This document shows, piece by piece, positions 6,843 to 44,307 of a stretch of DNA of 64,000 bases. Below the pieces are notes generated by a model. It saw nothing but the letters and a program-made list of their open reading frames with translations, made no database searches and had not been told where the DNA came from. Each line of letters starts with the position of its first letter. Within the stretch, counting starts at the first letter, position 1. The DNA is taken from sequence record LC727701.1, one strand, 5' to 3'. Made by a program: the position numbers and the translations under genes.

Positions 6843-6861
6843 ATTTAAATCTATATTACAG
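6843..6861 (+). promoter_or_regulatory. phiKZ-type early promoter
   Basis: ATTTAAATC-TATATTAC (6852-6859) upstream of ORF 6906. Confidence 0.7.
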
Positions 6862-15987: not shown

Positions 15988-16036
15988 GCGGTGTGTACAC
16001 CGCTTTTATTCCGTGTTTATACTCAAAAGGTAATTT

Positions 16037-17170
16037 ATGATTATGTTTAAGTACTTAAAAAATGTTATTGATAGTTTTAACAAACCAAAAAAGGTAGATA
16101 CATTAGAACAAAAGATAGCTGATCTAAATGATAAATACATCAGAGAAAATGTAGATGTTGATAAAATTGATATTTTGTCAGGTTACTTCACAGGAATGCT
16201 ATCTGGTAAATTACATGATCGAAGTTTAGCATGGGGTTATTATACCAAAGAAACTAAGACATGGATGATTTATTTTGTTGAACAAAATTTTGATTCATTC
16301 ATGTATAAAGTAACTAATAATTCATTAGATATTATTAATCTAACTGATATAGAAGATCTTAAATTATTCTATTTTTCTAATGAACAATACTTACCTTTAA
16401 ATACACCAATCAATAGTGATCTAAATGTGGCTGTAATTTTCACATCAAAATCACTCACTAAGGATTTCATTGATCCATCTTTAATAGATCAAGTTAAATC
16501 AGTTAATAGTAATTACAAGATTGTGATGGATGGGTTATCTGATAATTCCAAATTTGATAGTAACCCAATAACTCTAATTGTAGAGTCTTATGAAGCAGAT
16601 GGTGATATCGTCGTAGTTGAACTAACTAATGGTACAACTGTGGCCATCAATAGAAAACTACTTAATATGTTTATGTATCAGTCAAGAATAGTTGATACAT
16701 GTAATAACTCAAAAGTGCTTATAGATTTCAATGGACGGCTAAAGTTCACACCTATGGAGAATCATCTAGGTGGCATCAATAGTGCAATGCATTATTGGTC
16801 AAGTAATGGAATTATCAAAATTAGGTGTGACTATAGCATCACATTAAATCTAGATAAGTTTCCAGAGATTGTTAATCATATTGGAAACTGGATACATATT
16901 GAAGCTAAAACAATTGCAAAAGTAATTGACTCGGTTGTGGTACCATACTTAACAAATGGGGAGCTTAGTACGCTCATTGTTGATTTAGATAATGTCGATA
17001 TTCAGTATCGTGGTTTAACATTATCTGGTAATATCAGCTTGCGTGATCGTTTAGATAAATGCAAAATCAAACTGATAAATCCATCAACTGATCCATATGA
17101 GATACCTAGTCTAAATGGTAAACGTGATGTCCATGGTTTTTATAGGGTAGATGGAAGTTTATTAAAATGA
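16037..17170 (+). CDS. Hypothetical protein (377 aa)
   Basis: AAGGT RBS, long ORF. Confidence 0.8.
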   Translation: MIMFKYLKNVIDSFNKPKKVDTLEQKIADLNDKYIRENVDVDKIDILSGYFTGMLSGKLHDRSLAWGYYTKETKTWMIYFVEQNFDSFMYKVTNNSLDIINLTDIEDLKLFYFSNEQYLPLNTPINSDLNVAVIFTSKSLTKDFIDPSLIDQVKSVNSNYKIVMDGLSDNSKFDSNPITLIVESYEADGDIVVVELTNGTTVAINRKLLNMFMYQSRIVDTCNNSKVLIDFNGRLKFTPMENHLGGINSAMHYWSSNGIIKIRCDYSITLNLDKFPEIVNHIGNWIHIEAKTIAKVIDSVVVPYLTNGELSTLIVDLDNVDIQYRGLTLSGNISLRDRLDKCKIKLINPSTDPYEIPSLNGKRDVHGFYRVDGSLLK

Positions 17171-17637
17171 TTAAATTAGTGATTAGTCTTTTTTATAAAA
17201 TAGTTAATGAAAAGATGTCACCCACATATAAGAAATTAGTTACATTAGATAGAAATGGGTACATTTTCAATAATAAACAAGACCTGTATTCAATTAATCT
17301 TTCACTCTATCTTGAACTCATTCATTCAGTGACGAATGACTATATTGTTCAAGAAATTATAATGTGTCTAAGTTCTAAGCCACAAGCAGTGAAAGAACTA
17401 TTCCTTGAAGACCTAAGTACTAATAATCAACTACATTATTCATTGTTAGCTTGTAAAATAATGAATGAGAGGAAAATCATTAATAAGAATATTAATAAAG
17501 CGTGTGCTAAAAATATGGCTACTTTTTTAAAGGGCTATTTCCCAAGAGACTACTTCACTTGGTATAGTTGTCTCTATTTAGCGCTATCGGCTAAAAGTAA
17601 AGCTGAGAATAACAAAGTATCTGTTATTAATGAGTAA
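17167..17637 (+). CDS. Hypothetical protein (156 aa)
   Basis: ATGA overlap. Confidence 0.75.
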   Translation: MIKLVISLFYKIVNEKMSPTYKKLVTLDRNGYIFNNKQDLYSINLSLYLELIHSVTNDYIVQEIIMCLSSKPQAVKELFLEDLSTNNQLHYSLLACKIMNERKIINKNINKACAKNMATFLKGYFPRDYFTWYSCLYLALSAKSKAENNKVSVINE

Positions 17638-17680
17638 ATACAATACTATGTAGTAGTATTTCTATTACGTACCTTTCGAG

Positions 17681-17716
17681 GCATATACTCCATGACTTAT
17701 GTTGTGGGGTATATGT
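17681..17716 (+). promoter_or_regulatory. 16-bp RNA hairpin, possible processing site
   Basis: GCATATACTCCATGAC-TTAT-GTTGTGGGGTATATGT; four G-U pairs give strand polarity. Confidence 0.5.
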
Positions 17717-17739
17717 GTTATAATGTTTAAGAGGTTAAA

Positions 17740-18087
17740 ATGCAAAAGCAACTAAATTCTGATGATCTAGATGTTCTTGACTCCTTTAATGCAGCATGGG
17801 AAATTGTTAAGGAAGAACATACTGATCTATTCTCACGTATAGCGATGATGGCTATTAATAAGTTAACTGATGATGATATCTCAGTCAATGATACTAAAGT
17901 AAGTATTCAGCAAGTAGTTAATTTCCATGAGAGAATTCGAGATATCATTCCTAGCTCTGAGATTGTTAATCTTACGATTGTTAAAACTATCTTAGGTGAA
18001 ATGAATGGTTGGTTAGAATTTGATGAACTTAATGAAGAACTATTTACAGCATTAGGTAAAGCTTATAGCACTGTTAACTTTAATTGA
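17740..18087 (+). CDS. Hypothetical protein (115 aa)
   Basis: GAGGT RBS. Confidence 0.8.
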   Translation: MQKQLNSDDLDVLDSFNAAWEIVKEEHTDLFSRIAMMAINKLTDDDISVNDTKVSIQQVVNFHERIRDIIPSSEIVNLTIVKTILGEMNGWLEFDELNEELFTALGKAYSTVNFN

Positions 18088-18155
18088 TCATTAATATGAA
18101 AATTAAAACAATATAAGTGAGGCATGTGCCTCACTACATAGTAGAGGACTAACAC

Positions 18156-18488
18156 ATGCAGATTCAATTAGATCCATTAATGGTTTACCATGGTAGCACT
18201 AGATCTTTATTTAATGAAGATTCTAGTTTAAATGTTGTTGATGTAAGGGGCATTCAATTAAATGCTGAAGGGATAGCTGATAACAAAAATTACTATTTTG
18301 ATTATGGACGTAAGAAAGATGATGATGGTGAAATACTCACTATTTACGTACATGATCGAAATGTAGCTAAAGATTTTATTGTACTGTACGTTGAATTCCA
18401 TTTAGGCACACATAAATTTCATACGTATGTACATCCACAATATCGGCATAAATTTCCAGTATTAGTACTGGAGTTATTATTCGTTTAA
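18156..18488 (+). CDS. Hypothetical protein (110 aa)
   Basis: GAGGA RBS. Confidence 0.8.
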   Translation: MQIQLDPLMVYHGSTRSLFNEDSSLNVVDVRGIQLNAEGIADNKNYYFDYGRKKDDDGEILTIYVHDRNVAKDFIVLYVEFHLGTHKFHTYVHPQYRHKFPVLVLELLFV

Positions 18489-18493
18489 CATTA

Positions 18494-18516
18494 AGGGACT
18501 CTCATTAAGAGTCCCT
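18494..18516 (+). terminator. Terminator hairpin
   Basis: AGGGACTCT-CATTA-AGAGTCCCT plus T-rich tail. Confidence 0.75.
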
Positions 18517-18676
18517 ATTTATTTTGCGTAAATACATGTATGAAAAAGAAAGCATTTATTGAAACTAGCCTAAAATATTCAAACACCAAATATAACAAAG
18601 CGATTATCTGTAATGAAATAAAATTCAAACAGTACTAAACATACTAACCCTATGAATTAAAACGCATGGTGGTTGT

Positions 18677-19075
18677 ATGAAAATTTATGGTTCTTCTTTT
18701 CATGAAGTCACACTAGAATATGGAAAACCCTTTATACGCAATGGGGTTTTAAAACATTTACCTGATCTAGGTACACCAGACTTAGGATGGACTGATTTTA
18801 ATATCCTTGAAATTATTCCAGGACCAGGTTATATCGATAAGAATACTCTAAACTTTTATAAAGAAAGAGATTGCTTATTTCCAGCAATCGTCAGGTTTAC
18901 TGTATTTGAAGAAGAGCGTAATCGTATTATATCAACAATTAATGTTGATCTGGCGAAAAAGGAATTAGAGTGGAATAAGACTGATCGTTTTTGGGAAATC
19001 GAAAACTTTGCAATTAGATTCCAATTAACTCAAAATCCTTATTCAGTTTTATGGGCATCCAATGGATCACTATAG
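18677..19075 (+). CDS. Hypothetical protein (132 aa)
   Basis: GGTGG RBS. Confidence 0.7.
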   Translation: MKIYGSSFHEVTLEYGKPFIRNGVLKHLPDLGTPDLGWTDFNILEIIPGPGYIDKNTLNFYKERDCLFPAIVRFTVFEEERNRIISTINVDLAKKELEWNKTDRFWEIENFAIRFQLTQNPYSVLWASNGSL

Positions 19076-19496
19076 GTGTCATATGCTTACAATGGTTCCG
19101 TTATACCCTGGTGTGAGAGGATATCTTGAAGACTCGGTATTTTCAAAGAATGGGATTAATGATATTGGTTATCATAAATGGCTATCCCCTAAACGAATGG
19201 TAGGTCCAGATGGACTAATCATTAGTGAGGTAAAGATAACTCCACGTATAGCCAGAATGGAAGGCGAAGTAATTCTTAAAGTATGGGATAAATGGCGAAG
19301 AGCCCAGCCTAAGCTAGTTGCTACTGTGTATATTGATCCTAAAGATAATTCATACAGGGTAGAAGTAGAGCCTTTTTATGCATGTCGTCGGATATTACTT
19401 GAGGTGGATTTATGGGCTCAAGTAATACCTGGTGACCGTGCACCATTTGTAAATGACTCTGTAGATGGTACATGGGCATCAAGAGATATTATTTAA
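19062..19496 (+). CDS. Hypothetical protein (start uncertain)
   Basis: ORF in operon context. Confidence 0.65.
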   Translation: MDHYRCHMLTMVPLYPGVRGYLEDSVFSKNGINDIGYHKWLSPKRMVGPDGLIISEVKITPRIARMEGEVILKVWDKWRRAQPKLVATVYIDPKDNSYRVEVEPFYACRRILLEVDLWAQVIPGDRAPFVNDSVDGTWASRDII

Positions 19497-19792
19497 TGCT
19501 TATACCAATTAAACTTCGTAAGACATTTAAAAGACTGGGCAAAAGACATTCTAAAAGAGTGTTGGCTGCTCAGTCATCTTTTCTGCCGTTCGGTGAATTA
19601 ACGTTGAGGAAGCAAAGAATGCCTAAGAAAAATAAAGAATATATTCTTGATGTTATTGATACTAATACTAAAGAACTACAGGCACAGATTAATACGTTAA
19701 GTGAACTTGTATGTGAGCAACAGAAACAAATTAGTTTACTAAACAGAACACTAGTTGAGTTACAAGATAATTTGAAAAAAGATAGGGATTAA
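19472..19792 (+). CDS. Hypothetical protein with C-terminal coiled coil (start uncertain)
   Basis: LQAQINTLSELVCEQQKQISLL heptads. Confidence 0.55.
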   Translation: MGIKRYYLMLIPIKLRKTFKRLGKRHSKRVLAAQSSFLPFGELTLRKQRMPKKNKEYILDVIDTNTKELQAQINTLSELVCEQQKQISLLNRTLVELQDNLKKDRD

Positions 19793-19794
19793 AA

Positions 19795-20124
19795 ATGAAT
19801 GTAGATTATGTGTACCTACTTTTGACCTTATTCTGGATAGTTGTTTTATTTTCATTTAGCTATGTATCTCAACGTTATAAACGAATTAAAGAAAAACGAA
19901 GAGCTGATTTTCTAGTTAAAAGAAAATTAGTATATAATTATTTCAAAGTAACAGATCCTTCTGAATTAACTAATGATTCTATAGAAAGTATCATACTTAA
20001 ATTAATTGGTGATAATTATAGAAAATTAACAGATATACAGAAAGTAGTAATTAGGGCAGCAGCAGCTCGTGGTTATATGAATAACCCTAATAAACCAATT
20101 GGCAAACATTTGAAATATATGTGA
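19795..20124 (+). CDS. Membrane-anchored hypothetical protein
   Basis: N-terminal TM segment VYLLLTLFWIVVLFSFSYV followed by basic residues. Confidence 0.7.
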   Translation: MNVDYVYLLLTLFWIVVLFSFSYVSQRYKRIKEKRRADFLVKRKLVYNYFKVTDPSELTNDSIESIILKLIGDNYRKLTDIQKVVIRAAAARGYMNNPNKPIGKHLKYM

Positions 20125-20134
20125 GTTATAAAAA

Positions 20135-20650
20135 ATGTCAGAAAACTGCCCGTTATATATAGCTGCTATTAAAAAAGATCTTTTAAAAACAACAGGTTTG
20201 TATAAACCTTATAATGATTCACCAATAGCTGTGGTTAGTAATGAAACCAGTAAGTGGCATGTAATGCTAAATATATTACGACATGGTTGGGAATGGATTG
20301 AAATACCTGAAGGTGAGATTAAACAACCGGAAAGTTACCATGACTATGTTATTCTAGCATTAACCACTGTATTAACTGATACTTTAGATTATAAAAATGA
20401 TCCAAACTCTGATAAATATATCAAGCAAATAATCTGTACTGATATAGCACTAAAAGTTGAATATGATAAATTAATCAATGTGCTAGAGACAAGTAACGAG
20501 TTAGATTTAGCTGATGAATACACCTTTACTAAACAAGGTAATCTCAGAGGATATTTCCATTATGATGAGTATTATGGTTTAGATGTACTGGCATGTGCAT
20601 CTTATGTGATCTGTTCACATATCGAACTAACACCTAGAAATGTTAAATAA
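20135..20650 (+). CDS. Hypothetical protein (171 aa)
   Basis: ORF in operon context. Confidence 0.75.
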   Translation: MSENCPLYIAAIKKDLLKTTGLYKPYNDSPIAVVSNETSKWHVMLNILRHGWEWIEIPEGEIKQPESYHDYVILALTTVLTDTLDYKNDPNSDKYIKQIICTDIALKVEYDKLINVLETSNELDLADEYTFTKQGNLRGYFHYDEYYGLDVLACASYVICSHIELTPRNVK

Positions 20651-20662
20651 TAGGAACTACTG

Positions 20663-21262
20663 ATGAAAAAACGTACCGCTTATATCGATCGTGCTAAATT
20701 CCGAGATTTTCTAGCCGAGAAAAAAATTAGCGTAAGTAGCCGACAGTGGATTGAAAAGAGCCACCCAGATCATAAAGAATATTACAAGGCAATCCTAGAT
20801 TACGTCGTATCTAATGTAAAATTCAAAGAAGAACGTTATATTGAAAAGGCAAATGAGGTTATTATTAATGGGTGTATTCGATATCATCTACCCATTCACG
20901 CTCAACGTGCACTAACTGTAGTTGAAGAAGAATTCATTAATAATGCTAGTCTTCAATTTACTTATCTGAATGATAATGATACTAATATCGCCAATATTAA
21001 CTTTGAAGAAGTTCTTGATGCACAAGTAACTGAGAATGAAACTGAACTAAGACAAAGTTGGGAATATGTCAATTGTGATATCAACCCATCAGAATACTTT
21101 ATTGATGTTGTTGATGTACCAGAAGAACTAATTCTTCGTCTATCTGTATTCCGTTTTGTACACAGTATCAAGAAACTGGAAGTAAAGGATAAGTTAGATC
21201 TTGCCGATGTTGTAGGTAAAGATCTAGTTATTGAAGATGGTAACGTTAAGGTTGTAGAATGA
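20663..21262 (+). CDS. Hypothetical protein (199 aa)
   Basis: AGGA RBS. Confidence 0.8.
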   Translation: MKKRTAYIDRAKFRDFLAEKKISVSSRQWIEKSHPDHKEYYKAILDYVVSNVKFKEERYIEKANEVIINGCIRYHLPIHAQRALTVVEEEFINNASLQFTYLNDNDTNIANINFEEVLDAQVTENETELRQSWEYVNCDINPSEYFIDVVDVPEELILRLSVFRFVHSIKKLEVKDKLDLADVVGKDLVIEDGNVKVVE

Positions 21263-21315
21263 TTTAAGGCTATTTTAGTAGCTTTATATTCTGATCTTAG
21301 CAACCTAGGTACAAC

Positions 21316-21684
21316 GTGATGCAATGTTTAACACACGTAATGAAGTTAGTGGCCGTATTAAGTACGTTGTTATACTTATCAAACCCACTAGCTGCATCGT
21401 TGGTAGTTGACGAGAATTACTGTAATGGTGTTGCACTTATAGCACATGCCACAGCAGAAGCACGTCAGCGTAAAACACCCATTTTACAATGGGAAGAAAA
21501 CCTACGATCCCTAAAAGGGTACGGCGTGAAGAACAAAGATAACGTTCTTTACAATGTTCTCCCAGCAGCAATTAAAGAGGTGCACGTTGTGTATTCACGT
21601 AGACAAAGCCCACGTGATGCATACGTTACATCATTTAAAACCTGTATGGATAACAACTACGGTAAAGCTGTGGTTGTAAAATAA
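21316..21684 (+). CDS. Exported two-cysteine protein (family member 1)
   Basis: Signal peptide KLVAVLSTLLYLSNPLAA; mature part has ENYC near N-terminus and KTC near C-terminus. Confidence 0.7.
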   Translation: MMQCLTHVMKLVAVLSTLLYLSNPLAASLVVDENYCNGVALIAHATAEARQRKTPILQWEENLRSLKGYGVKNKDNVLYNVLPAAIKEVHVVYSRRQSPRDAYVTSFKTCMDNNYGKAVVVK

Positions 21685-21687
21685 ATA

Positions 21688-21705
21688 CCAGCCCTTCGGG
21701 GCTGG
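21688..21705 (+). terminator. Intrinsic terminator
   Basis: CCAGCCC-TTCG-GGGCTGG plus T-rich tail. Confidence 0.85.
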
Positions 21706-21719
21706 TTTATTTCATCTAG

Positions 21720-22037
21720 ATGAGAATCTGTGGGTTGCAAATGTATAAAGTATTTGTTATATCAATGATAACACTAACAGCTATATCAACATGTGTAACT
21801 TTCATTATTAATATAAAAAATCATTATATTCACTGGATGGGTGTTTATAAGGTTAGATATGTATTAGATAAAATGCCCAATGGCATAAGTTATTTTTTCT
21901 ATCAAAATGCTGTCCAAGACATTATAGATAAAGAATCATCTAAAATAACAAATCAACATATTTTTACATCTTTTATTTACGATATCAACTCATTGATTAT
22001 ATTAAAATGTAATAATAGGGAAACAGCAAATGAATGA
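21720..22037 (+). CDS. Membrane-anchored hypothetical protein
   Basis: TM segment VFVISMITLTAISTCVTFII. Confidence 0.65.
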   Translation: MRICGLQMYKVFVISMITLTAISTCVTFIINIKNHYIHWMGVYKVRYVLDKMPNGISYFFYQNAVQDIIDKESSKITNQHIFTSFIYDINSLIILKCNNRETANE

Positions 22038-22320
22038 TATCATGACAGTAATTATAGGTATTTTGTTTCTGATTATAATGATGGCTTTAATTAACTGGGG
22101 TTATTATGCCATCAAACACACGATAAAGTGTAACAGGCTTTATAAAGAAGCACTATCAATTATTGACAATATGAGTGATGGTTTATCTGAATACCAGTAT
22201 ACAGTAGCTATTGGACGTTTACGTAAAAAGGCATACTCTATCGACCATTTAACTGCTGTTAAAATGTTTGAAGCATTAGACTTAGTTATTAAAGATAAGT
22301 CAAGAAAGAAAAATAAATAA
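22030..22320 (+). CDS. Membrane-anchored hypothetical protein
   Basis: TM segment VIIGILFLIIMMALINWGYY. Confidence 0.7.
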   Translation: MNDIMTVIIGILFLIIMMALINWGYYAIKHTIKCNRLYKEALSIIDNMSDGLSEYQYTVAIGRLRKKAYSIDHLTAVKMFEALDLVIKDKSRKKNK

Positions 22321-22328
22321 GCATAAAT

Positions 22329-22387
22329 AGGAGAGCTATTTAGCTCTCCTTTATTGCATTAAATTTTTTTTGAAATCTATATTACAT
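22329..22387 (+). promoter_or_regulatory. Terminator followed by class A early promoter
   Basis: Hairpin 22329-22350; 22357-22386 identical to 38036-38065; TATATTAC at 22378-22385. Confidence 0.8.
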
Positions 22388-22421
22388 ATTTGGTCAAGTC
22401 ATATCAAAATAGGTAGTTATA

Positions 22422-22595
22422 ATGCTAGCATTACATTCACTACTATTATTAGTTATAGTGATTTGTTATATAATTCATAAGTGGTTGTGGTATACTTTCA
22501 ATATGTTTAAACTAAAAGACATTATTAAAAATAAAGACAATTTAACTAATGATGAACTATTAAAATTACTCATTGATAAAATAAAGGCAACCTAA
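22422..22595 (+). CDS. Small membrane protein (57 aa, not in ORF track)
   Basis: AGGT RBS; MLALHSLLLLVIVICYIIHKWLW...; TAATG overlap with the next gene. Confidence 0.65.
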   Translation: MLALHSLLLLVIVICYIIHKWLWYTFNMFKLKDIIKNKDNLTNDELLKLLIDKIKAT

Positions 22596-23062
22596 TGTAT
22601 CCATTCTTTACAGGTAATGAGAAAGTTACTGTAGATGTTCTTGATGATAAACATAATCTACATAGAAGTTGGACTGATTATAAACATCCCATCACGACGC
22701 GTGTGGATGGTAAACTAACCAATGTGTGGTATAAAGTTGAACCACCGATGAGTGCTAAGGATATTGAAAATAACTTTACAATTGACAAAGATAAAGTTAA
22801 ATTATCTAATCGTTTGCACCAGGCTTTAGATGCATCGTTGATTAAAAATGAATTAGAAGAGTTTAACAAATTAATTGATCTATGCGTAAAACATGTTAAT
22901 TCAGTTAGTATTCATCTAGGTCTTACTATTTGGAAATTAGCAGATACTGTAAAATATGAAAAAGCAGATTTAAAGAAATTATTTAATGTGCATTATACCA
23001 AATCTACTGAACTTGTAAAAGAAAAGAATATAGTGCCCTCAGTAGAAGATATCTTCCTATAA
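22595..23062 (+). CDS. Hypothetical protein (155 aa)
   Basis: Translationally coupled ORF. Confidence 0.75.
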   Translation: MYPFFTGNEKVTVDVLDDKHNLHRSWTDYKHPITTRVDGKLTNVWYKVEPPMSAKDIENNFTIDKDKVKLSNRLHQALDASLIKNELEEFNKLIDLCVKHVNSVSIHLGLTIWKLADTVKYEKADLKKLFNVHYTKSTELVKEKNIVPSVEDIFL

Positions 23063-23084
23063 TTTATTTAAAGGTAATACAAAT

Positions 23085-23993
23085 ATGCTTAAGGTAAAAT
23101 CATTACTCACTGGCCATATTCTTCGAGCTACCTATGATTGGTTTCTTGAGAATAACTTCAGAGATATTCTAATTGTAGCACATACTCAATTAGTACCTGA
23201 TTTATCTGAGGTAGCTCTAAAGCATGCGAAAGAAGATCACACTATCACTTTCAATATCCATCCACGCTGTGCAAAGAATTTTTATATCAGTGACGAATAT
23301 ATCTCTTTCAATGTAACAGTAAATGGAGTTGGGGTCAGTATTAAACTTCCTCTTTATGCAGTATTGGGTGTAGTTACACCTATTGATGATAATTCTAACG
23401 CATTCTTTGAAATGCCGCTAGTAGATAGATATCTCAATGCAGATACTATTCGTGCAACATTAGAAGGAACTGTTAATAATGCAGTTGACAAAAACCCAGT
23501 ATTAACTACCGTAGGTAATGTCACTGAGGTTAATTTTAAAAATAAAGCCGATACCGCTAATGGTAAGTTAGTTGTAAGGAATACATCTGAGAATGAGCAT
23601 GATCAGATGATTGAAAGCGCCATTAACAAAGTAACTGAATTTAGTAATCCAGAATTAGATGCACATATTAGAGTAGCGGTAACTGCAATTAAACAGAATG
23701 CACCAGAATTGATTATGGATTGGTGTGAGCGGGTTATTAATTGTACACGTAATGAAAACTATCAGGATAACATCAATGTACTTATGATGGAACTTCTCAG
23801 TTACCCTATTTCAAATGTGGTCAGTGAATCAACTGTTGACTCGGGCGACGATACATCTAATTCATTTGACAATGATGTAAATAAGATGGTTGAGGATTTC
23901 AATAATTCTTCCAATTCGCAGGTTATTATTAATAAACCTTCTCGTCCTACCGGTCCACCAAAACTCACTGTTATTAAAGGTGGTAAGAAATGA
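23085..23993 (+). CDS. sspB: SspB-like ClpXP adaptor with extended middle region
   Basis: LRATYDWFLEN, ITFNIHPR, ISFNVTVNG...LPLYAVLG match the SspB fold; C-terminal RP...PKLTVIK resembles the ClpX-binding tail. Confidence 0.8.
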   Translation: MLKVKSLLTGHILRATYDWFLENNFRDILIVAHTQLVPDLSEVALKHAKEDHTITFNIHPRCAKNFYISDEYISFNVTVNGVGVSIKLPLYAVLGVVTPIDDNSNAFFEMPLVDRYLNADTIRATLEGTVNNAVDKNPVLTTVGNVTEVNFKNKADTANGKLVVRNTSENEHDQMIESAINKVTEFSNPELDAHIRVAVTAIKQNAPELIMDWCERVINCTRNENYQDNINVLMMELLSYPISNVVSESTVDSGDDTSNSFDNDVNKMVEDFNNSSNSQVIINKPSRPTGPPKLTVIKGGKK

Positions 23994-24247
23994 ATGCAAC
24001 TTTAGCAATTCTTTTTAGTAGTATCAGTATCGCTGGTTATCAAGCCAATGGTGCATCGCAGTCAACCGCTGAGTTCTCTGACATGGCTACTTGTTTTAGC
24101 GCGATTGAGCGCATTCAAAAACTAGCTAAAGCAAGTGCTATTCGTAATAATGTAGAGACTGTAAAAATCAGTGATGGTGTTCTATTACGTTATTTTTCTT
24201 CTAGTACTAGTAAAGTAGAACATACTCTAATCTGTGTAAATAAATAG
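23990..24247 (+). CDS. Small exported two-cysteine protein (different pattern)
   Basis: Hydrophobic N-terminus; EFSDMATC...LICVNK. Confidence 0.65.
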   Translation: MNATLAILFSSISIAGYQANGASQSTAEFSDMATCFSAIERIQKLAKASAIRNNVETVKISDGVLLRYFSSSTSKVEHTLICVNK

Positions 24248-24255
24248 GTACGGAT

Positions 24256-24963
24256 ATGTCTGAGAAAATGTATTTATCTTTTTCTGGAATTGGACACAAT
24301 GACGTAATCAAACAAGATCTTAATGGATTCGTTCCAATGGATGTATCAACTATTGATAATGAAGTAGCTAATCGATTATTTTACACTCCATTCAATAGTT
24401 CTGAACCAGGTACCTCATTACCTAATGTTGCTAATGTGGTATTCAAGGTATTACCTATCCATATCGAGGATAACACTATCTGTGTTTTAGATAGTTGTTC
24501 TAGTACCGAATACTCATTGAATGACTTAGTTGATACTAGTGTCTCATCATTAGAAACATATGGTCCATTATTAGATTTACGTAGTAGTGATCCAATTGAG
24601 ACATATGCTAATCAGGCAGTGTATACTTGGTTAAATAAGAATATCTGTAATATCGAATTTGAAGTACATGGCGGGTTGCATTTGCAACTAACTGTTGACC
24701 AAGTGCGTTCCAATGTTAATGCATTTGTAGCAGGTATTGATCTTGACATCGACGATAAATTGATGGTATATGTGGTGATTAAAATCAATGATCGTTTATA
24801 CGATGCTTGGTCTAGTCAACATGTGGTGGAACCATTAACAATGTATCATGTGCAAGGTGGTCATGAGCCTATTGTCTATAGTGAGACCCATATTGAAAAT
24901 AGCCTATTGCGATATGCTAAAGAGAAAGGTTGGGCTGAAATTTTGACTCGTATTGGTCTGTAA
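24256..24963 (+). CDS. Hypothetical protein (235 aa)
   Basis: AGGT RBS. Confidence 0.75.
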   Translation: MSEKMYLSFSGIGHNDVIKQDLNGFVPMDVSTIDNEVANRLFYTPFNSSEPGTSLPNVANVVFKVLPIHIEDNTICVLDSCSSTEYSLNDLVDTSVSSLETYGPLLDLRSSDPIETYANQAVYTWLNKNICNIEFEVHGGLHLQLTVDQVRSNVNAFVAGIDLDIDDKLMVYVVIKINDRLYDAWSSQHVVEPLTMYHVQGGHEPIVYSETHIENSLLRYAKEKGWAEILTRIGL

Positions 24964-25027
24964 TAAAAATACTTCTTATAGACTAATAATATAGGTAAGA
25001 TACTAGCCGATTGGTTAGTTGCGCTTA

Positions 25028-25047
25028 GGGAGTCCTTCGGGACTCCC
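25028..25047 (+). terminator. Terminator-like hairpin
   Basis: GGGAGTCC-TTCG-GGACTCCC; no U tract. Confidence 0.65.
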
Positions 25048-25068
25048 GTATATCGTCTAGGAGGTTTT

Positions 25069-25362
25069 ATGTATACAGTTACACTTGAACAAGTAGGACA
25101 CCGTATACCGTCTAGTTTAAGTGCTTTTGTAATTAGACCGTTTGAAAATACCATTACGCATAATGATACGTCTTATTACTTGATCATGGGTAAAGATGAT
25201 TTCGATAACATGCACATGGAATGGCGAGATGTAGCTGTAGTTGATAGTCAAGCCGTTATAGTTGCTACATACACTCCATCGAAAAACTCATTTAATCTTG
25301 TAAAAAATGAATTAGGTATACCGGTTGAAATCAAATACAAACGAATAGAGGTTGATCTGTGA
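25069..25362 (+). CDS. Hypothetical protein (97 aa)
   Basis: GGAGG RBS. Confidence 0.8.
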   Translation: MYTVTLEQVGHRIPSSLSAFVIRPFENTITHNDTSYYLIMGKDDFDNMHMEWRDVAVVDSQAVIVATYTPSKNSFNLVKNELGIPVEIKYKRIEVDL

Positions 25363-25389
25363 TTACTAGTAAGGTTAAAGGAATGAAGT

Positions 25390-25590
25390 ATGGATCGTCT
25401 TGATGAAAGAATCGCATTCAGTGTAAGATCGTACAAAATTTTCAATGCTCTCGCCAATGGCCGAGTTCGAGCATTGATTATTAACTTTAAAGATGGTAAG
25501 GGCACGATCATGTCTATTAGCGATGATCGCCGCCATGATAAACATCTCTGGTTCAACTGTGGACTAGTAGACAATCCAAGGATCAAGTAA
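25390..25590 (+). CDS. Hypothetical protein (66 aa)
   Basis: AGGA RBS; TAATG coupling to thyA. Confidence 0.7.
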   Translation: MDRLDERIAFSVRSYKIFNALANGRVRALIINFKDGKGTIMSISDDRRHDKHLWFNCGLVDNPRIK

Positions 25591-26660
25591 TGGAACAATA
25601 TCTTAATTCAATTCGTTTAGTTAAAGAACTCGGTGTACATAAAGGTGATCGTACTGGTACTGGTACTCAGAGCATGTTTGGTCAACAAGAACGTTATAGT
25701 TTACGTAACAACGTTCTACCCGTAGTAACTACTAAGAAAATTCATCTTCCATCTGTTATCCATGAATTATTCTGGATGCTTTCTGGTGATACTCGTGTAG
25801 ATTATTTAATTGAAAATGGTGTACGCATTTGGAATGAATGGGTTAAACCAAATACTGCGGTATATCGTGAGTTAAATCAAGAAGAGCTTGACTCAGCTAT
25901 TCTAAAGAAAGTTGGTGGTCCATTTGCCCTTTATTTTCATTGTCTAGATGATGAAGTAATCATTCAGACTAGAGATGAGTTTGAAGCTTCTTTAAGTGGT
26001 GCTGAGATATTTAGCTTTTGGAATCAATATCCAACCATTAATATCGAAGCTACCCATGTAGTTGGTGTTAACGCCGACCGCTGGAAGTTAGTATCTACTC
26101 TAGATTTCGATGAAAGTGTGACACCAGAACTAATTAAATATGAATATGGTAAACGACTATATAAATTGCTATTTGGTGTTAAGCCTCTAAAACTCATCGG
26201 GGGTGATCTAGGTGCCGTTTACGGTAAGACATGGCGTGATCTCGAAGATACCCGTGTGATCCCAAAACACGAGTGGGCTGTTTACGAGGCACGTGGCTTT
26301 GACTTCGTAGTTGATATTCCAGGTACTTACATGGAGAATGATCGGTGTGTTGTAACACGTCGTATTGATCAAATTCAAGACGTGATTGATCAACTTAAGA
26401 CAAACCCTGATTCCCGTCGAATCATCGTTTGTGCGTGGTCACCGCAACTCGTTGATGAACAGGCGCTCCCACCATGTCATAGCTTCTTTCAGTTCTGGAC
26501 TCGTGAACTGACGCTAGAAGAACGGTATGACTGGGTCAAACTTAACGACACTGAAGCTCAACGTATTTTCCTTGAAGGTGCGCAACCGGAAACTGATCAC
26601 GCACTGTGGGATAAACTTGGTGTTCCTAAACGTGCATTGAGCTGCCAGCTCTACCAGCGT
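25590..26660 (+). CDS. thyA: Thymidylate synthase, exon 1 (357 codons)
   Basis: GDRTGTGT, LPVVTTKK, IWNEW, GDLGAVYG, DSRRIIV, catalytic ALPPCH, ends LYQR. Confidence 0.95.
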
Positions 26661-34315: not shown

Positions 34316-34333
34316 AATAATTACTTAATATAC

Positions 34334-34412
34334 ACCCTCCCTTCGGGGAGGGTTTTATTTATCTTTTTTTGTATTTAAACTATTTAAAAAGCTATATTAC
34401 AAATATGAATTT
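34334..34412 (+). promoter_or_regulatory. Terminator followed by class B early promoter
   Basis: ACCCTCCC-TTCG-GGGAGGGT-TTT; TATATTAC at 34393-34400. Confidence 0.8.
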
Positions 34413-34433
34413 AATAACCAAGAGGGCAATACA

Positions 34434-34697
34434 ATGACTGAACGTTTGAAATCCGTATGGTGCGCTTGCAGCTTACTGCGTGAACGCTGGAGACACATCC
34501 AAGACATTGCTGTCGGGGATGAACATTATGTCATAGTAAAAAACGATATGCTGATGGTGTTTCGTGGTCAAGTACCGGTAGGTAGCATGTACCGGGGTGA
34601 CAGTGACCCACTCATCTACGAGGGTGGTGCACTGGAAGAATTTACTAAAGTTGTATTGGATTTAGAATTCAATACTCGTGGTGAAACCAATAGTTAA
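34434..34697 (+). CDS. Hypothetical early protein (87 aa)
   Basis: GAGGG RBS. Confidence 0.8.
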   Translation: MTERLKSVWCACSLLRERWRHIQDIAVGDEHYVIVKNDMLMVFRGQVPVGSMYRGDSDPLIYEGGALEEFTKVVLDLEFNTRGETNS

Positions 34698-34723
34698 TAA
34701 AATTAATTTTGAGGTAATTCATT

Positions 34724-35131
34724 ATGAAATATGTAATTGCATTTATGTTGTCTATTGTAACTATCACTGCTAACTCGGCTGTCATGTACACTAATCGTGA
34801 TTCATGCATCGAGTTTGTAAAACAGGCAGATGAATTGTTTGTAAAAGGTGCATCTGTAACTGAAGTGCAAATGAAGACTTATGAAAGGATTCATTATATC
34901 CTTAATAACACTAAAGATCTAAAGACCAACCAGTCTAAAGTTGAAGAACTCACTGGTCTATTTTACCTATGGTCTAAGGTAGATAAAATGGCAATTGAGG
35001 CAAGTTTGCCACGTGCAACAAATGCTGCTAAAGTCTATAAGACCACTCCTGAGAAATTCATCATTGATGGTTATTTCCAGCGTTGTGTAGCGGCAGGTGC
35101 GTTTGAAGCAAAACCACTTACTCTAAAATAA
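34724..35131 (+). CDS. Exported two-cysteine protein (family member 2)
   Basis: Signal MKYVIAFMLSIVTITANS; RDSC...QRC. Confidence 0.8.
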   Translation: MKYVIAFMLSIVTITANSAVMYTNRDSCIEFVKQADELFVKGASVTEVQMKTYERIHYILNNTKDLKTNQSKVEELTGLFYLWSKVDKMAIEASLPRATNAAKVYKTTPEKFIIDGYFQRCVAAGAFEAKPLTLK

Positions 35132-35143
35132 TGGAGGTACAAC

Positions 35144-35503
35144 ATGCTTAAGAATTGGCTATTATTCCTTTTCCTGCCAATCCTGTCCATTGCATGTCAG
35201 CCTGCCCACGCTGTAGAAGTGGGTATTACTAAGAAATCATGTAATGTGGCAGTAAATCTTTCACAAAAAGCAACTGAGCTTTATGATAAGAACCTATCCC
35301 AATTTGAGATAATGATGCAGTTAGACATGATCTCTCGTAAGGATATGGATGACTTGGAGTTCTATGCAGGTACCGTATATGCTAAATTAAACTTAGTTGA
35401 TATTCGCGTAAATAAACGAAAAGGATTTACCAATGGAGCTATTCTAGATAGGCTAGCTGAAAACTGTGTTGAAGCAATTGGTACTAAATTTAACTTGGAG
35501 TAG
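35144..35503 (+). CDS. Exported two-cysteine protein (family member 3)
   Basis: Signal ending AHA; ITKKSC...ENCVEAIGTKF. Confidence 0.8.
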   Translation: MLKNWLLFLFLPILSIACQPAHAVEVGITKKSCNVAVNLSQKATELYDKNLSQFEIMMQLDMISRKDMDDLEFYAGTVYAKLNLVDIRVNKRKGFTNGAILDRLAENCVEAIGTKFNLE

Positions 35504-35506
35504 AAT

Positions 35507-36301
35507 ATGGTTAGTATTTATATTGTCATTATACTCATGGCTATGCTAGCTGCATTGACATGTGGTAATTTGGTAGATAGCTGGGTAAGGCCAGCTATTC
35601 TAAAGTGGTTAAATGATGATGTCGCTATTCATTTCACCAATGCTACCTGGATGGTTGGGGGGATCCCTAATAGTGTTCCAATGCAACTAGGTAAAGCTGT
35701 TTGGTTACCCAAATACGTGGGTGACGGAATACGTCTTTATATCACGGCTGATGAAATAAAATTTGGATGGAATGGTAAAGAAAAAGATGCTTTAGCACGA
35801 GCCATTGTTGAAGTTATCTTTATTGGTAAAAATCCAAATAGTAAACTTCTTGAAGTAAGTATTAAACCTATTTGGTTACACCCTTCTATCCAAAAAGAAA
35901 GTTTCTATTTAATGTTTGATTGGGAAAAGCTTTATACAAAAAATGAAGAGATGCGTATTTGTTGGAAGACAATACGTCACACTTTTTTCTATGGATTCCT
36001 AGGTTTGCTATTTGGCGGTAGTGCCAATGCAGATAACCTTGTATTAACTGAACGTGGATGTGACCAATATGAAGCAATGGTGAGAACTATTGCATCTAAA
36101 GCTTATATTGGATTAGATCCAGTTATGGGTAGGGAATTCATTATTAATGATCCTGATATGTTAAATGCCCGTGAGAAAGCACAACGTAATACCCGTATCA
36201 TTATCGATATGGTGGAAACTGGACAAGAACCCAAAGACATTGCATTATGGATGAATACTCAATGTAAACAAGAAGCAGTGTCAAATTTAATCAAACAGTG
36301 A
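35507..36301 (+). CDS. Membrane protein fused to, or overlapping, family member 4
   Basis: N-terminal TM; internal ATG 35951 followed by a signal ending SANA; LTERGC...TQC. Confidence 0.7.
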   Translation: MVSIYIVIILMAMLAALTCGNLVDSWVRPAILKWLNDDVAIHFTNATWMVGGIPNSVPMQLGKAVWLPKYVGDGIRLYITADEIKFGWNGKEKDALARAIVEVIFIGKNPNSKLLEVSIKPIWLHPSIQKESFYLMFDWEKLYTKNEEMRICWKTIRHTFFYGFLGLLFGGSANADNLVLTERGCDQYEAMVRTIASKAYIGLDPVMGREFIINDPDMLNAREKAQRNTRIIIDMVETGQEPKDIALWMNTQCKQEAVSNLIKQ

Positions 36302-36314
36302 AAAAGGCATAGAT

Positions 36315-36698
36315 ATGAAAAGAAATTTTGAAGATGATCACGTGGTAATGGCAGTGGAAGTATATGAGAAACTGAAAGAAGCTGCTGCTTATTCATTACA
36401 CTCTTCTGAAATTAGTAAGATCGAACGACATATGCGTAAGTTTAATCGTGTTCAACGCGATAAACATATTGAAAATATGCATATGGAAATGCTTGAGAAA
36501 CGCGAGGCTATTAGAAAAGCAAAATCTTTCTTTTCTCAAAATGCCGGTAAAATTGGTTGCGTAGTAGATAGGCTTGTCAAAGTATGTGAAGTGTATAAAA
36601 TGGATAAGTCTATGGTGGTTGTTGAGTTTCTCCAACATAAATCTAAAATTAAAGTTCCAGTAAATCCTGAAAAAATTACTATTCTTACCATTAAATAA
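36315..36698 (+). CDS. Hypothetical protein (127 aa), possible C-terminal SH3-like strands
   Basis: AAGG RBS. Confidence 0.75.
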   Translation: MKRNFEDDHVVMAVEVYEKLKEAAAYSLHSSEISKIERHMRKFNRVQRDKHIENMHMEMLEKREAIRKAKSFFSQNAGKIGCVVDRLVKVCEVYKMDKSMVVVEFLQHKSKIKVPVNPEKITILTIK

Positions 36699-36715
36699 AT
36701 GAAGAAGGATTTAAA

Positions 36716-37171
36716 ATGAAAAATGTAATTGCAGCAGCTTTCGCTGGTCTCATTGCCATTACCGGTATCATGTTCAATACCGCAATGGCTGAAATCAAGA
36801 TTGGTAAAAAAGATGCTCAACTCACTGTGCAGTCGTGTGCAATGGTTGAAACCATTACTAAACAAGCTGTATTTCGAATGAGTGAAGGTCATAGCGCAGA
36901 TGAAGTTGGTGTGCTTATGCTCAACAACTCTGCTAAACTCAAAGATGAGTTGGATACCAATAATTGGATTGCGTTAACATTCGTATTCAATAGTCTTAAT
37001 AAAATCAATAATGACCTTAACAGTAAAGAGATCCATGATTATATCCGTAGTCAAGGTTACAATGTGACTACTCCTAATCTGGCAGCTTTTATCAGCGGGT
37101 ATTATGGCAATTACTGCATGAAGCATATTGGTGAGAAATTCACTCACATGGTAATTGTTGAACTCATTTAA
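36716..37171 (+). CDS. Exported two-cysteine protein (family member 5)
   Basis: Signal ending AMA; LTVQSC...NYCMKHIGEKF. Confidence 0.8.
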   Translation: MKNVIAAAFAGLIAITGIMFNTAMAEIKIGKKDAQLTVQSCAMVETITKQAVFRMSEGHSADEVGVLMLNNSAKLKDELDTNNWIALTFVFNSLNKINNDLNSKEIHDYIRSQGYNVTTPNLAAFISGYYGNYCMKHIGEKFTHMVIVELI

Positions 37172-37203
37172 TTCATATCGAATACTTTCAAAAGGAAAAT
37201 AGG

Positions 37204-37581
37204 ATGAAATACGTCTTCTCGCTCATTATCACTATGGTAGCAATGTCGGTTAATGCACAACCCGTAACCGTGTCATCTTGCTACGTGCTGCACAGCTTGG
37301 CAAAGAATATGGTTCAATTCTACACTAATGGCGGTGAGCCATTGGAGATGTATGCAATACTGCAAGATGAACTATCCATTGCCATAGATAAAAACCAGAG
37401 TGATAAGGCACTCGCTATTAATATCGCATTGGATAATGTCGATGTAATATACCAAAATCTCACTGATCCCGCACTTAAGCTTTTGGCAAAGAGCGAGGGA
37501 AGTGATCTTGGTGAGATGCTGACTGAAAAACTCAGTAATGGGTGTTTCAATATAGTCGGCGAGGAGTTGTATGATAACTAG
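37204..37581 (+). CDS. Exported two-cysteine protein (family member 6)
   Basis: Signal ending VNA; VTVSSC...NGCFNIVGEEL. Confidence 0.8.
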   Translation: MKYVFSLIITMVAMSVNAQPVTVSSCYVLHSLAKNMVQFYTNGGEPLEMYAILQDELSIAIDKNQSDKALAINIALDNVDVIYQNLTDPALKLLAKSEGSDLGEMLTEKLSNGCFNIVGEELYDN

Positions 37582-37810
37582 AATCATCCTAATTGTTGCA
37601 TGGGTATGGGTAATCTCTCTTATGGGAATGATTACGTATGTTCTTTATGATACGTATCAATTTCGTAAGAAATTAGAAATGCCTGTTGTAGAATGGGAAG
37701 ATAAGGCGAAGGACACTCCTGTTAAGAAGTGTCCAGATGAAGTATTATTCGCTGAAGACCCAAAGGATGGCAAACTCAAAATGGGATGCCCTGAGAGTTA
37801 TAAGAAATAA
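37571..37810 (+). CDS. Membrane-anchored protein with two C-terminal cysteines
   Basis: GAGGAG RBS; TM IILIVAWVWVISLMGMITYV; KKCP...MGCP. Confidence 0.75.
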   Translation: MITRIILIVAWVWVISLMGMITYVLYDTYQFRKKLEMPVVEWEDKAKDTPVKKCPDEVLFAEDPKDGKLKMGCPESYKK

Positions 37811-37812
37811 TT

Positions 37813-37856
37813 AGAGGACCTTCGGGTCCTCTTTTTAACCGACTGGACGGTTAAAA
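37813..37856 (+). terminator. Terminator plus abutting second hairpin
   Basis: AGAGGACC-TTCG-GGTCCTCT then TTTTAACCG-ACTGGA-CGGTTAAAA. Confidence 0.8.
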
Positions 37857-38103: not shown

Positions 38104-38502
38104 ATGAATGAAAATATTAAACGCTCATTTATTGGTATGCCACTGTCTATCAATATTGGTATGCCACTGTCTATCAATATTGGTAAAGATATTGATTTAT
38201 CAATGTATGAACGAATTGTATTTGTATCACAAGTAGATAAAAATGATATAAAATACTTTGTCTATAAATTAAATAAATCCAAATTTAAACATGACCCAAA
38301 TGTAGTTAATTACGCCGAAACAGATAAAGATATTATTATTTATCCCCCGCTTGATTTCATTCAGACAATTAATGAATATTATCGAGTATCATTGGAAAAT
38401 GAATTTATGTGTCATCCTGTTATTCTAAAAGCAGATGATAGTAATAATCAAGAAGTATTTTTGAAAACTATTAAAATGGTACATGAGTATGTCGATGAAT
38501 AA
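38104..38502 (+). CDS. Hypothetical early protein with N-terminal 8-aa duplication
   Basis: AGGT RBS. Confidence 0.75.
   Translation: MNENIKRSFIGMPLSINIGMPLSINIGKDIDLSMYERIVFVSQVDKNDIKYFVYKLNKSKFKHDPNVVNYAETDKDIIIYPPLDFIQTINEYYRVSLENEFMCHPVILKADDSNNQEVFLKTIKMVHEYVDE
38131..38184 (+). repeat. 24-bp in-frame tandem duplication (2.25 units)
   Basis: ATTGGTATGCCACTGTCTATCAAT twice plus ATTGGT; encodes IGMPLSIN-IGMPLSIN-IG. Confidence 0.95.
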
Positions 38503-40257: not shown

Positions 40258-40692
40258 ATGACTGAGATAGTGATTGCACTCATCCTGTCAGCAATTATTG
40301 TTTATCTAATTAATATTTTTAAACACCCAAAAATAATTTATGCCAATAGTGTAAATGATAATGTCTTCATTGTTACTGGTTGCTCTTATGTATCTGAAAA
40401 TAATGAAGATGGTACATTAACAACCTTTTCACCTAAATTAAATAATAGGTTAATAATTGACTTAACTAAAGGTCAGCCCAATAAAGACTTTTATATTTCA
40501 GTATTAGATAACACACTTAAATTCCATCACACTGTTGATGAAATTATCACAGCTAATAAATGGGAAGCTTTATTTAAAATTAGCATAACTAAAGAGGATG
40601 TGTGTATCTCAGGAATACCTCTTAAAAATAAAAACATAAAATGTAATTTACACTGGGTTATAGCACCAAGTAAAATGGTGAATAAGTTGTAA
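40258..40692 (+). CDS. Membrane-anchored hypothetical protein
   Basis: TM IVIALILSAIIVYLINIF. Confidence 0.75.
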   Translation: MTEIVIALILSAIIVYLINIFKHPKIIYANSVNDNVFIVTGCSYVSENNEDGTLTTFSPKLNNRLIIDLTKGQPNKDFYISVLDNTLKFHHTVDEIITANKWEALFKISITKEDVCISGIPLKNKNIKCNLHWVIAPSKMVNKL

Positions 40693-43580: not shown

Positions 43581-43877
43581 ATGAATAAATATTACCATTT
43601 GAAGAAACAGAAGGATGCTACATGGACAATTGAATTTTTAGGAAAGATGCGTAATTTTAAATTCAACCATGTAACTAAAAATAGAAATAGTTGGGTTAGC
43701 ATGGGCATTGAAGGTTATCCAGCACTTAAATTTAACTGTGATGGATTTGGCAGATTAGAAAGTATTCAACCTATTGATGATGATTTAACCATCGATGAAA
43801 TATTTATTCCATGTAAACATTCTGTTTCACAGTGTATCGACATAACAACACTTTATACAGGTGGTCAATGTGACTGA
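43581..43877 (+). CDS. Hypothetical protein (98 aa)
   Basis: GGTG RBS. Confidence 0.7.
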   Translation: MNKYYHLKKQKDATWTIEFLGKMRNFKFNHVTKNRNSWVSMGIEGYPALKFNCDGFGRLESIQPIDDDLTIDEIFIPCKHSVSQCIDITTLYTGGQCD

Positions 43878-44307
43878 GATTATATTAGTTATTTTATCAT
43901 TGTTTGTTCTTTCAGTCATAACCGGCTATTGTATAACCCGGTTAGAGAAAACCGAAGATATAGCCTATTATGTTAAATCAATTACGTATTACTTAGGCGA
44001 ATCTGGCGATACATTTTTTAATAGTGAACCTAAGGTAATACAGCTGGATAACCCTGTAAAACTAGTTTTCACTAATGAACCAGTTCAAATAAAAACACTT
44101 TATTTAGACCTAGATAAGAAAGAATTATATCTTAATCACCCCGAACACGCTTGTATTGTAATGCGTGTTATTTTCTTTTTAAATTATCATAACCAGAAAA
44201 AACTCATCGGTTATTCAGATGAGTACTATCATGACAATGAGTATGGTGATAGTGAGTTTGATATGACTATAAAGAAAATTAGTGTAGAATGCTATAAAGG
44301 TTTATAA
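43861..44307 (+). CDS. Membrane-anchored hypothetical protein
   Basis: TM IILVILSLFVLSVITGYCI. Confidence 0.75.
   Translation: MVNVTEIILVILSLFVLSVITGYCITRLEKTEDIAYYVKSITYYLGESGDTFFNSEPKVIQLDNPVKLVFTNEPVQIKTLYLDLDKKELYLNHPEHACIVMRVIFFLNYHNQKKLIGYSDEYYHDNEYGDSEFDMTIKKISVECYKGL

Follow-up and report, generated by a model that had tools for sequence, protein, structure and literature searches.

The closest described counterparts of the proteins reported here are small, early phage products that act at the host envelope. In T4, the early gene product Spackle (gp61.3) carries a 22-residue signal peptide, folds into a 75-residue helical bundle with a Cys29-Cys81 disulfide (mature position 7 and 16 residues from the end), inhibits the tail lysozyme gp5 and contributes to superinfection exclusion (PMC7677548, PMC7650644). 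In T5, Llp is an early lipoprotein on the periplasmic face that blocks the phage receptor (PMC9586334). We analyzed a 64,000-nucleotide stretch of sequence record LC727701.1 (the window throughout), in which an operon at positions 34393-37832 encodes several small proteins of comparable layout. By sequence comparison, this region matched Pseudomonas phage phiNK1 at 100% identity and phiKZ at 99.9%; the source of the window is a phiKZ-type jumbo phage, and the region corresponds to phiKZ genes PHIKZ246.1, 247, 248, 249, 250, 251, 252 and 253 (eight products, written here as gp246.1 to gp253). An earlier reading of the window (the original prediction) had proposed that five open reading frames (ORFs) of this operon and one outlier form a single diversified family of exported two-cysteine proteins. 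All six ORFs exist, as PHIKZ247, 248, 249, 251, 252 and PHIKZ229. The observation proved real and well bounded and is partly confirmed: it had been over-extended to six proteins and wrongly called hypervariable. By profile comparison, gp248, gp251 and gp252 are homologous, and gp247 probably belongs with them.

The likeness to Spackle is one of architecture. Both are early gene products of a virulent myovirus with a cleavable signal peptide (predicted for the phiKZ proteins) and a small all-helical domain (again predicted in phiKZ) that has one cysteine early in helix 1 and another near the C-terminus, and neither has homologs in cells. The phiKZ members differ in being larger (89–126 versus 75 residues) and in occurring as several paralogs per operon, among them a predicted lipoprotein and a domain joined to a membrane protein. 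For the phiKZ proteins, lysozyme binding could be proposed only by analogy with Spackle. Spackle (PDB 7CN6, 6X6O) was not returned by profile and single-sequence searches of all PDB chains (E ≤10), by Foldseek against PDB or by PHROGs; we therefore regard the phiKZ proteins as possibly working like Spackle rather than as members of its family. Llp is the closest analog of gp248, which is predicted to be a small early lipoprotein facing the periplasm. The genes for Llp/Cor (T5; T1/phi80) adjoin a receptor-binding protein gene, whereas the phiKZ operon adjoins an HD phosphohydrolase gene and small early genes, and only gp248 has a lipobox; no sequence similarity to Llp/Cor was detected in terms of an annotated PHROG, Pfam or PDB match. 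The beta-rich fold, with its inserting loop, of the bacterial lysozyme inhibitors Ivy and MliC/PliC as well as PliG and PliI was not seen in our structure models, which were all-helical, and no Pfam or NCBIfam match to these inhibitors was obtained. Sequence and fold searches against Pfam, NCBIfam, PDB and annotated PHROGs were negative, in agreement with the earlier statement that no described family is represented. The family is new, although its general kind is already known.

Homology among the two-cysteine proteins

Signal peptides were called with a heuristic that looks for a hydrophobic core and small residues at positions -3/-1. Both features were found at the N-termini of gp247, gp248, gp251, gp252 and gp229. 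All six mature domains, including the C-terminal domain of gp249, contain exactly two cysteines, the first at mature residue 8–16 and the second 11–17 residues from the end. Exactly two cysteines were likewise counted in 13/13 members and relatives, and these were the sole invariant columns in alignments of 11 and of 6 sequences. Both were present in every ortholog from a diverged phiKZ relative known from a 6.4-kb contig (L007). Upstream of the first cysteine, the same 13 sequences have an aliphatic residue at -5 (12/13), Thr at -4 (8/13) and Ser at -1 (7/13); downstream of the second, Gly is found at +5 in nine, Lys at +7 in seven and a hydrophobic residue at +8 in ten. Among 60 other + strand ORFs of similar size, only one had this end-to-end pattern. 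The combination of a signal peptide with two mature cysteines was thus recovered in every protein named by the original prediction, with the predicted segment being internal in gp249. A real exported protein family very probably exists in this operon, and the two cysteines probably form a disulfide staple.

Two of the proteins depart from simple secretion. In gp248, a lipobox-like cysteine preceded by Ala/Gly at the end of the hydrophobic core was present in five of six orthologs (phiKZ, L007, phiPA3, Phabio and PS119XW; absent in Psa21), and UniRef names the protein ‘Lipoprotein’; based on this conservation and name, gp248 is most likely lipid-anchored. In gp249, the signal-like hydrophobic segment is internal (residues ∼159–175), with a net charge of +2 before it and -3 after it, and has small -3/-1 residues in a cleavage-type motif that is kept in L007. 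The charge bias and the conserved motif would place the C-terminal 89 residues outside the cytoplasm. Translation of a separate product from the internal Met at 35951 was considered and rejected as unlikely because neither the window nor L007 has a ribosome-binding site at a suitable distance from it, and gp249 is more likely a single polypeptide with an internal signal-like segment.

Pairwise identity among the named proteins was 16–23%, as low as had been stated, and plain BLASTP linked only gp251 and gp252 (18% identity over 107 residues, E = 0.05). Profile methods recovered more. A hidden Markov model (HMM) built on the mature parts of five gp248-group orthologs and searched against 456 ORFs matched gp251 (E = 3.7e-4, colinear at both ends), gp252 (E = 2e-3) and Psa21 gp333 (E = 6.7e-3), and a second round added PS119XW gp301 (E = 0.005) and gp247 (E = 0.018). 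Profile-profile comparison with hhalign, for which the best pair with an unrelated control protein scored P ∼0.014, linked gp251 with gp252 (P = 1.9e-6 over 103 columns), gp248 with Psa21 gp333 (P = 1.5e-4), gp247 with PS119XW gp302 (P = 1.2e-4), and gp248 with both gp251 and gp252 (P = 8e-4 each). In addition, gp251 matched the PHROG of gp248 at E = 0.0026. In a column-permutation test of gp247 plus its PS119XW partner against the core, the real score was equaled or exceeded by 8/100 permuted alignments in local mode and by 1/100 in global mode. For the gp249 C-terminal domain against the core, hhalign was not significant and the real score was reached in 7/100 permutations; gp229 had no profile similarity to the core, with 89/100 permuted alignments reaching the real score. 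The HMM and hhalign results establish the homology of gp248, gp251 and gp252 at the level of sequence profiles and, with the permutation test, make gp247 a probable, if borderline, member; gp247 was also recovered (P0018) in the profile search of 1.84 billion proteins described below, but was itself part of the query. The C-terminal domain of gp249 possibly belongs to the family, sharing its layout without a significant sequence signal.

Predicted structures were compared as well. An AlphaFold2 model of mature gp248, run with its paralogs, was all-helical, with five helices (7–25, 30–44, 49–58, 62–69 and 74–89), the cysteines in the first and last of these, and a predicted local distance difference test (pLDDT) score of 64.6. 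Against BFVD models of the phiPA3, Psa21 and 201phi2-1 orthologs, which had been predicted independently, it gave template modeling (TM) scores of 0.65–0.74. Foldseek found no significant match to it in PDB (best E = 4). Human saposin A was met at TM 0.46/0.53 and E = 9.3, which is not significant; saposin-like proteins are also small helical bundles with disulfide-tied first and last helices, but they have three disulfides where only one is possible in the phiKZ family. The model of gp229 with five orthologs likewise had five helices (6–24, 29–39, 50–59, 62–66 and 73–85) with the cysteines in the first and last. It was of low confidence and clashed with the BFVD model of its own ortholog (TM 0.35), and its tertiary fold was therefore considered unreliable and not used. 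A superposition of predicted folds had been proposed as a check of the family, and the outcome was mixed: gp248 agreed with its orthologs, but its match to the BFVD model for the gp229 ortholog of PS119XW was weak (TM 0.59/0.49, E = 8.6).

One may also ask whether the proteins are one family at all. In the strictest view only gp248, gp251 and gp252 would be related, and the others would be unrelated exported look-alikes, since small periplasmic helical proteins often have one end-to-end disulfide. The permutation and hhalign results for gp229, the gp249 C-terminal domain and, marginally, gp247 favor this view, as does the failure of the gp229 model to retrieve any gp248-group model. Yet the end-to-end pattern is rare among other ORFs, the gp249 domain lies between family members of one operon, gp247 is linked to PS119XW gp302, which sits in the syntenic cluster, and the models of gp229 and gp248 agree in the order and the lengths of their five helices; the non-significant fold match noted above points in the same direction. 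On balance we consider this explanation a serious one that falls somewhat short of even probability. The outlier gp229 is unlike the others in timing, conservation and abundance. It is 42–53% identical across six genera of Pseudomonas jumbo phages, and its transcript rose from 1204 at 5 min to 15917 at 30 min (∼1,200 to ∼16,000–26,000), a rise that depends on ChmA and fails on ChmA knock-down. Thus, of the six proteins formerly grouped together, gp248, gp251 and gp252 stand, gp247 stands marginally, and the gp249 C-terminal domain and gp229 do not by profile comparison; gp229 has the same signal-peptide and two-cysteine layout, but no sequence signal and no early expression, and is a middle/late gene of a separate, better conserved family. 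As an abundant late protein that is predicted to be exported, it lies outside the lysis cassette gp141-144.

Early transcription, distribution and conservation

The operon forms a promoter-to-terminator unit, as had been proposed (Table 1). Six exact copies of the 9-base core of its promoter are present in the window, all of them on the + strand. An extended T-rich upstream motif is common to nine core copies when one-mismatch variants are counted, and most of these lie directly behind a terminator. The nine sites, all on the + strand, are at 6851, 22377, 30889, 31321, 34392, 38056, 40765, 52646 and 61958; they fall into two sub-types by their upstream T-rich sequence, and the window is largely an early-gene region. 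The same motif was found ahead of the counterpart genes in L007 and phiPA3. Since phiKZ does not use host RNA polymerase, a sigma-70 promoter scan of the window, which showed no enrichment (32 found versus 28 expected), is irrelevant here. Our assignment of an early promoter rests on the repetition of the motif within the window and on its agreement with phiKZ early promoters as published, which consist of an extended -10 box plus an upstream T-rich motif and are used by the injected virion RNA polymerase (PMC8244752). At the distal end, the hairpin has an 8-bp stem that our scan called on the - strand; on the + strand a T run follows it.

Table 1. Coordinates of the operon, its regulatory elements and the outlier gene in the window (aa, amino acids).
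Feature	Position	Strand	Remarks
PHIKZ229 (gp229), signal peptide and two-cysteine layout, separate family	21316..21684	+	annotated start ATG at 21319
Intrinsic terminator closing the preceding unit (after gp246, HD phosphohydrolase)	34334..34353	+	8-bp GC-rich stem, then T run
phiKZ early (virion RNA polymerase) promoter	34360..34400	+	T-rich stretch and 9-base core at 34392-34400
PHIKZ246.1, small, without signal peptide, outside the family	34434..34697	+	absent from L007
gp247, probable, weakly supported family member	34724..35131	+	signal peptide 1-18, mature 117 aa, Cys at mature 10 and 103
gp248, core member, probable lipoprotein	35144..35503	+	lipobox-like Cys at residue 18; mature 96 aa, Cys 10 and 85
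gp249, membership possible	35507..36301	+	hydrophobic segments ∼3-23 and 159-175; C-terminal 89-aa domain 36032-36298 with two-cysteine pattern
gp250, without signal peptide, outside the family	36315..36698	+	paralog at 10785-11387
gp251, core member	36716..37171	+	signal peptide 1-25, mature 126 aa, Cys 16 and 109
gp252, core member, very acidic (pI 4.2)	37204..37581	+	signal peptide 1-18, mature 107 aa, Cys 8 and 96
gp253, small single-pass membrane protein, outside the family	37571..37810	+	final operon gene; two Cys in C-terminal part
Intrinsic terminator ending the operon	37813..37832	+	hairpin then T run, 3 bases past gp253 stop

Published expression data agree with the motif. In RNA sequencing of two replicates, counts for gp247, gp248, gp249 and gp251 were highest at 5–10 min and four- to five-fold lower at 20–30 min (PMC12571901 source data), and the protein of the gp248 homolog in phage Churi, gp059, was detected at 15 min in two proteomic experiments (PMC11849849). 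The time course, the Churi proteomics and the promoter motif, shared with eight other sites in the window, confirm the operon as early. The gp252 transcript stayed at 1,300–2,900 normalized counts through 30 min, two- to five-fold above its operon partners; this late signal could reflect either a 3′ end protected by the terminator or an extra promoter, of which no example was found. A phiKZ antisense screen left the operon genes untargeted (PMC12571901).

The distribution of the family was assessed by an exhaustive HMMER search of 1.84 billion representative proteins with a family profile (cut-off E ≤0.001). Eight proteins were found, comprising phiKZ- and PS119XW-type members, close relatives or fragments and one further gp248-like protein, with no cellular homolog among the proteins searched. 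Word-indexed protein searches with gp248, the family alignment and gp229 returned near relatives only, and the gp248-group alignment matched only PA7, phiPA3 and Phabio in IMG/VR. Orthologs of gp248 in phiPA3, Phabio, Psa21, D6, PS119XW and 201phi2-1 were 24–39% identical to it, and gp249 was found only in phiKZ and L007. As far as these searches reach, the family is confined to phiKZ-like Pseudomonas phages. Fragments 86–91% identical to gp248 and its neighbors also occur in short NCBI contigs labeled Klebsiella pneumoniae (P0003-P0006, P0015), and are probably phiKZ-like Pseudomonas phage reads in mixed or contaminated assemblies. The number of copies in the syntenic cluster, counted in ∼8 kb around the gp248 ortholog for the other phages, was one in phiPA3 and in Phabio, two in Psa21, three in PS119XW and four to five in phiKZ.

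Within phiKZ-type phages the operon is nearly invariant. It was present at ≥95% identity in all 47 matching phage records and at ≥99% in 46 of them, with gp251 and gp248 being 99–100% identical in 47/47. The L007 contig carries the whole operon except gp246.1, and its family members are 73–85% identical to those of phiKZ at the protein level, with ratios of non-synonymous to synonymous substitution (dN/dS) of 0.03–0.16; the flanking genes gave 0.04–0.23, with dS partly saturated. The low dN/dS and the near-identity across records indicate a family that is old and conserved, contrary to the hypervariability that had been claimed for it. The divergence of the paralogs, as read from these comparisons, is one of old paralogy and not of ongoing diversification.

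Possible functions at the envelope

Up to the point of folding, the mechanism best supported would comprise Sec export, signal-peptide cleavage or lipidation, and a helical domain with one end-to-end disulfide. The genes gp246.1-gp253 are transcribed early, within minutes of infection, by the virion RNA polymerase that the phage injects, giving a set of old, strongly diverged paralogs (gp248, gp251, gp252, probably gp247 and possibly the gp249 C-terminal domain). Each would be exported by the Sec pathway, with gp247, gp251 and gp252 predicted to be cut by signal peptidase I, gp248 by signal peptidase II followed by lipidation, and the gp249 domain either remaining membrane-tethered or being freed at its internal cleavage site. 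Each is then expected to fold into a helical domain of ∼90–125 residues, five helices being predicted, in which a DsbA-made disulfide between the first and last helices most likely staples both ends.

Beyond folding we rely on analogy. The products could be stable periplasmic binders, made before the phage nucleus matures, that neutralize envelope-acting parts of later phages such as tail-associated peptidoglycan hydrolases, with the lipoprotein gp248 directed at a receptor or outer-membrane component. Superinfecting phages would thereby be excluded and lysis from without resisted, as happens with Spackle and Llp. The spread of isoelectric points (pI) among the paralogs, from 4.2 to 8.8, suggests that their partners are probably different. 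The ideas of superinfection exclusion, receptor masking and inhibition of peptidoglycan enzymes remain plausible, and the architectural parallel with Spackle makes them somewhat stronger than before. Taken as a whole, a set of Sec-exported, disulfide-stapled helical binders that protect or modify the envelope, resembling Spackle (and for gp248, Llp) in function and not in ancestry, is the reading we tentatively prefer, at rather less than even confidence; a role in envelope protection or superinfection exclusion is the most likely function but is itself doubtful.

Several points weigh against this preferred reading. Export and the disulfide are predictions and not observations, and the structure models are of low confidence (pLDDT 63–65). 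In the searches run, neither sequence nor fold linked the proteins to Spackle, to Llp/Cor or to a lysozyme inhibitor of any kind. Published evidence for the exclusion of superinfecting phages by phiKZ was looked for and not found. Tail, receptor-binding and lysis genes are not neighbors of the operon, and its strong conservation, like its low dN/dS, speaks against a rapid arms race over variable targets.

Such purifying selection would be better explained by a conserved host target than by a variable phage target, and host-envelope takeover is a functional alternative. Here the exported proteins would bind periplasmic enzymes or sensors of the host (lytic transglycosylases, penicillin-binding proteins, proteases or envelope-stress sensors) for the benefit of the resident phage, so that a punctured, swelling cell stays intact or an envelope alarm is silenced. 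Export, timing and stability also fit this, limitation to Pseudomonas-infecting genera fits a host-specific target, and the spread of pI values would suit a number of distinct partners. The searches gave no match to a partner or domain, though, and over-production of Churi gp059 did not inhibit growth of PAO1 (PMC11849849), so that any host target would have to be non-essential or not harmfully inhibited. We consider takeover unlikely.

Control of lysis timing, in which at least one member would act like the T4 RI antiholin to sense superinfection and delay lysis, appears very unlikely. RI is also an early, exported, small helical periplasmic protein, a description that the phiKZ proteins match, and phiKZ lyses more slowly at high multiplicity, with lysis inhibition suspected and its periplasmic signal receiver unknown (PMC12894885). 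RI, however, has a signal-anchor-release domain and binds a large periplasmic holin domain. In phiKZ, the periplasmic domain of the holin gp142 is small, and gp143, the regulator of this holin, lies in the cytoplasm (PMC12894885). No similarity to RI or to annotated antiholin families was found, and the operon is ∼90 kb from the lysis cassette. That the operon might itself be a lysis cassette was ruled out, as the phiKZ lysis genes are gp141-144 (PMC12894885).

The arms race between hypervariable tandem copies put forward in the original prediction is highly improbable: the very low identity of the paralogs and the change in copy number from one to five between genera would suit it, but it is contradicted already at the ortholog level by near-identity across the 47 records and by dN/dS values no higher than those of flanking genes, and only eight proteins worldwide match the profile.

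A further and bolder reading would see the operon as a ‘periplasmic immunity array’ of stapled helical binders from one ancestor, one lipid-anchored and one membrane-tethered. Each would neutralize a different envelope threat: a tail lysozyme from a competing phage, a peptidoglycan hydrolase of a tailocin or type VI system, or an envelope sensor of the host. We regard this as improbable as it stands. If true, the array would protect the outer compartment throughout the long cycle of a jumbo phage, as a counterpart, specific to that compartment, of the phage nucleus. Research on phiKZ has centered on events in the cytoplasm, namely on ribosome binders, RNA polymerases and the shell of the nucleus, and our reading of the literature turned up no description of a phiKZ protein at work in the periplasm ahead of lysis. 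Of the eight products of this operon, five or six are predicted to go to the envelope, and to do so within minutes of the start of infection. Should they be exclusion or protection factors, they would account for the survival of an infected cell under renewed attack over the ∼1 h cycle and could bear on the suspected lysis inhibition. As such factors they would be a first for nucleus-forming phages and a second, independent origin of the Spackle design. It is of practical value to know whether infected cells exclude other phages when phage-therapy cocktails contain phiKZ-type phages (e.g. OMKO1).

Other genes of the operon and its surroundings

PHIKZ246.1 is missing in L007 (positions 1861-1994, compared with 34316-34723 of the window), where the early promoter stands directly before gp247. 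The gp250 paralog, 25 kb upstream, was identified by BLASTP at E = 7.6e-10 with 34% identity in the first 80 residues; gp250 matches PHROG 18482 at E = 6.9e-13, and a signal peptide is found in neither protein. The final product, gp253, is 96% identical to its L007 counterpart. In the same position after the family genes, PS119XW gp303 (L006 5348-5518) and Phabio gp363 (L004 4351-4506) are single-pass membrane proteins of 51–56 residues that keep a short two-cysteine loop, and are unrelated to gp253.

The N-terminal part of gp249 (35507-35950) is weakly similar to a membrane-anchored ORF at 43861-44307 (25% identity over 103 residues; E = 2e-4 pairwise and 0.03 against all window ORFs), and the ORF at 40258-40692 has, by eye only, a similar N-terminal anchor. 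These three may constitute a second small membrane-protein family. Lastly, just beyond the operon, gp254 (38104-38502) contains a 24-base tandem duplication near its 5′ end that repeats eight residues, giving a protein of 132 aa versus 124 aa in phiKZ and L007.

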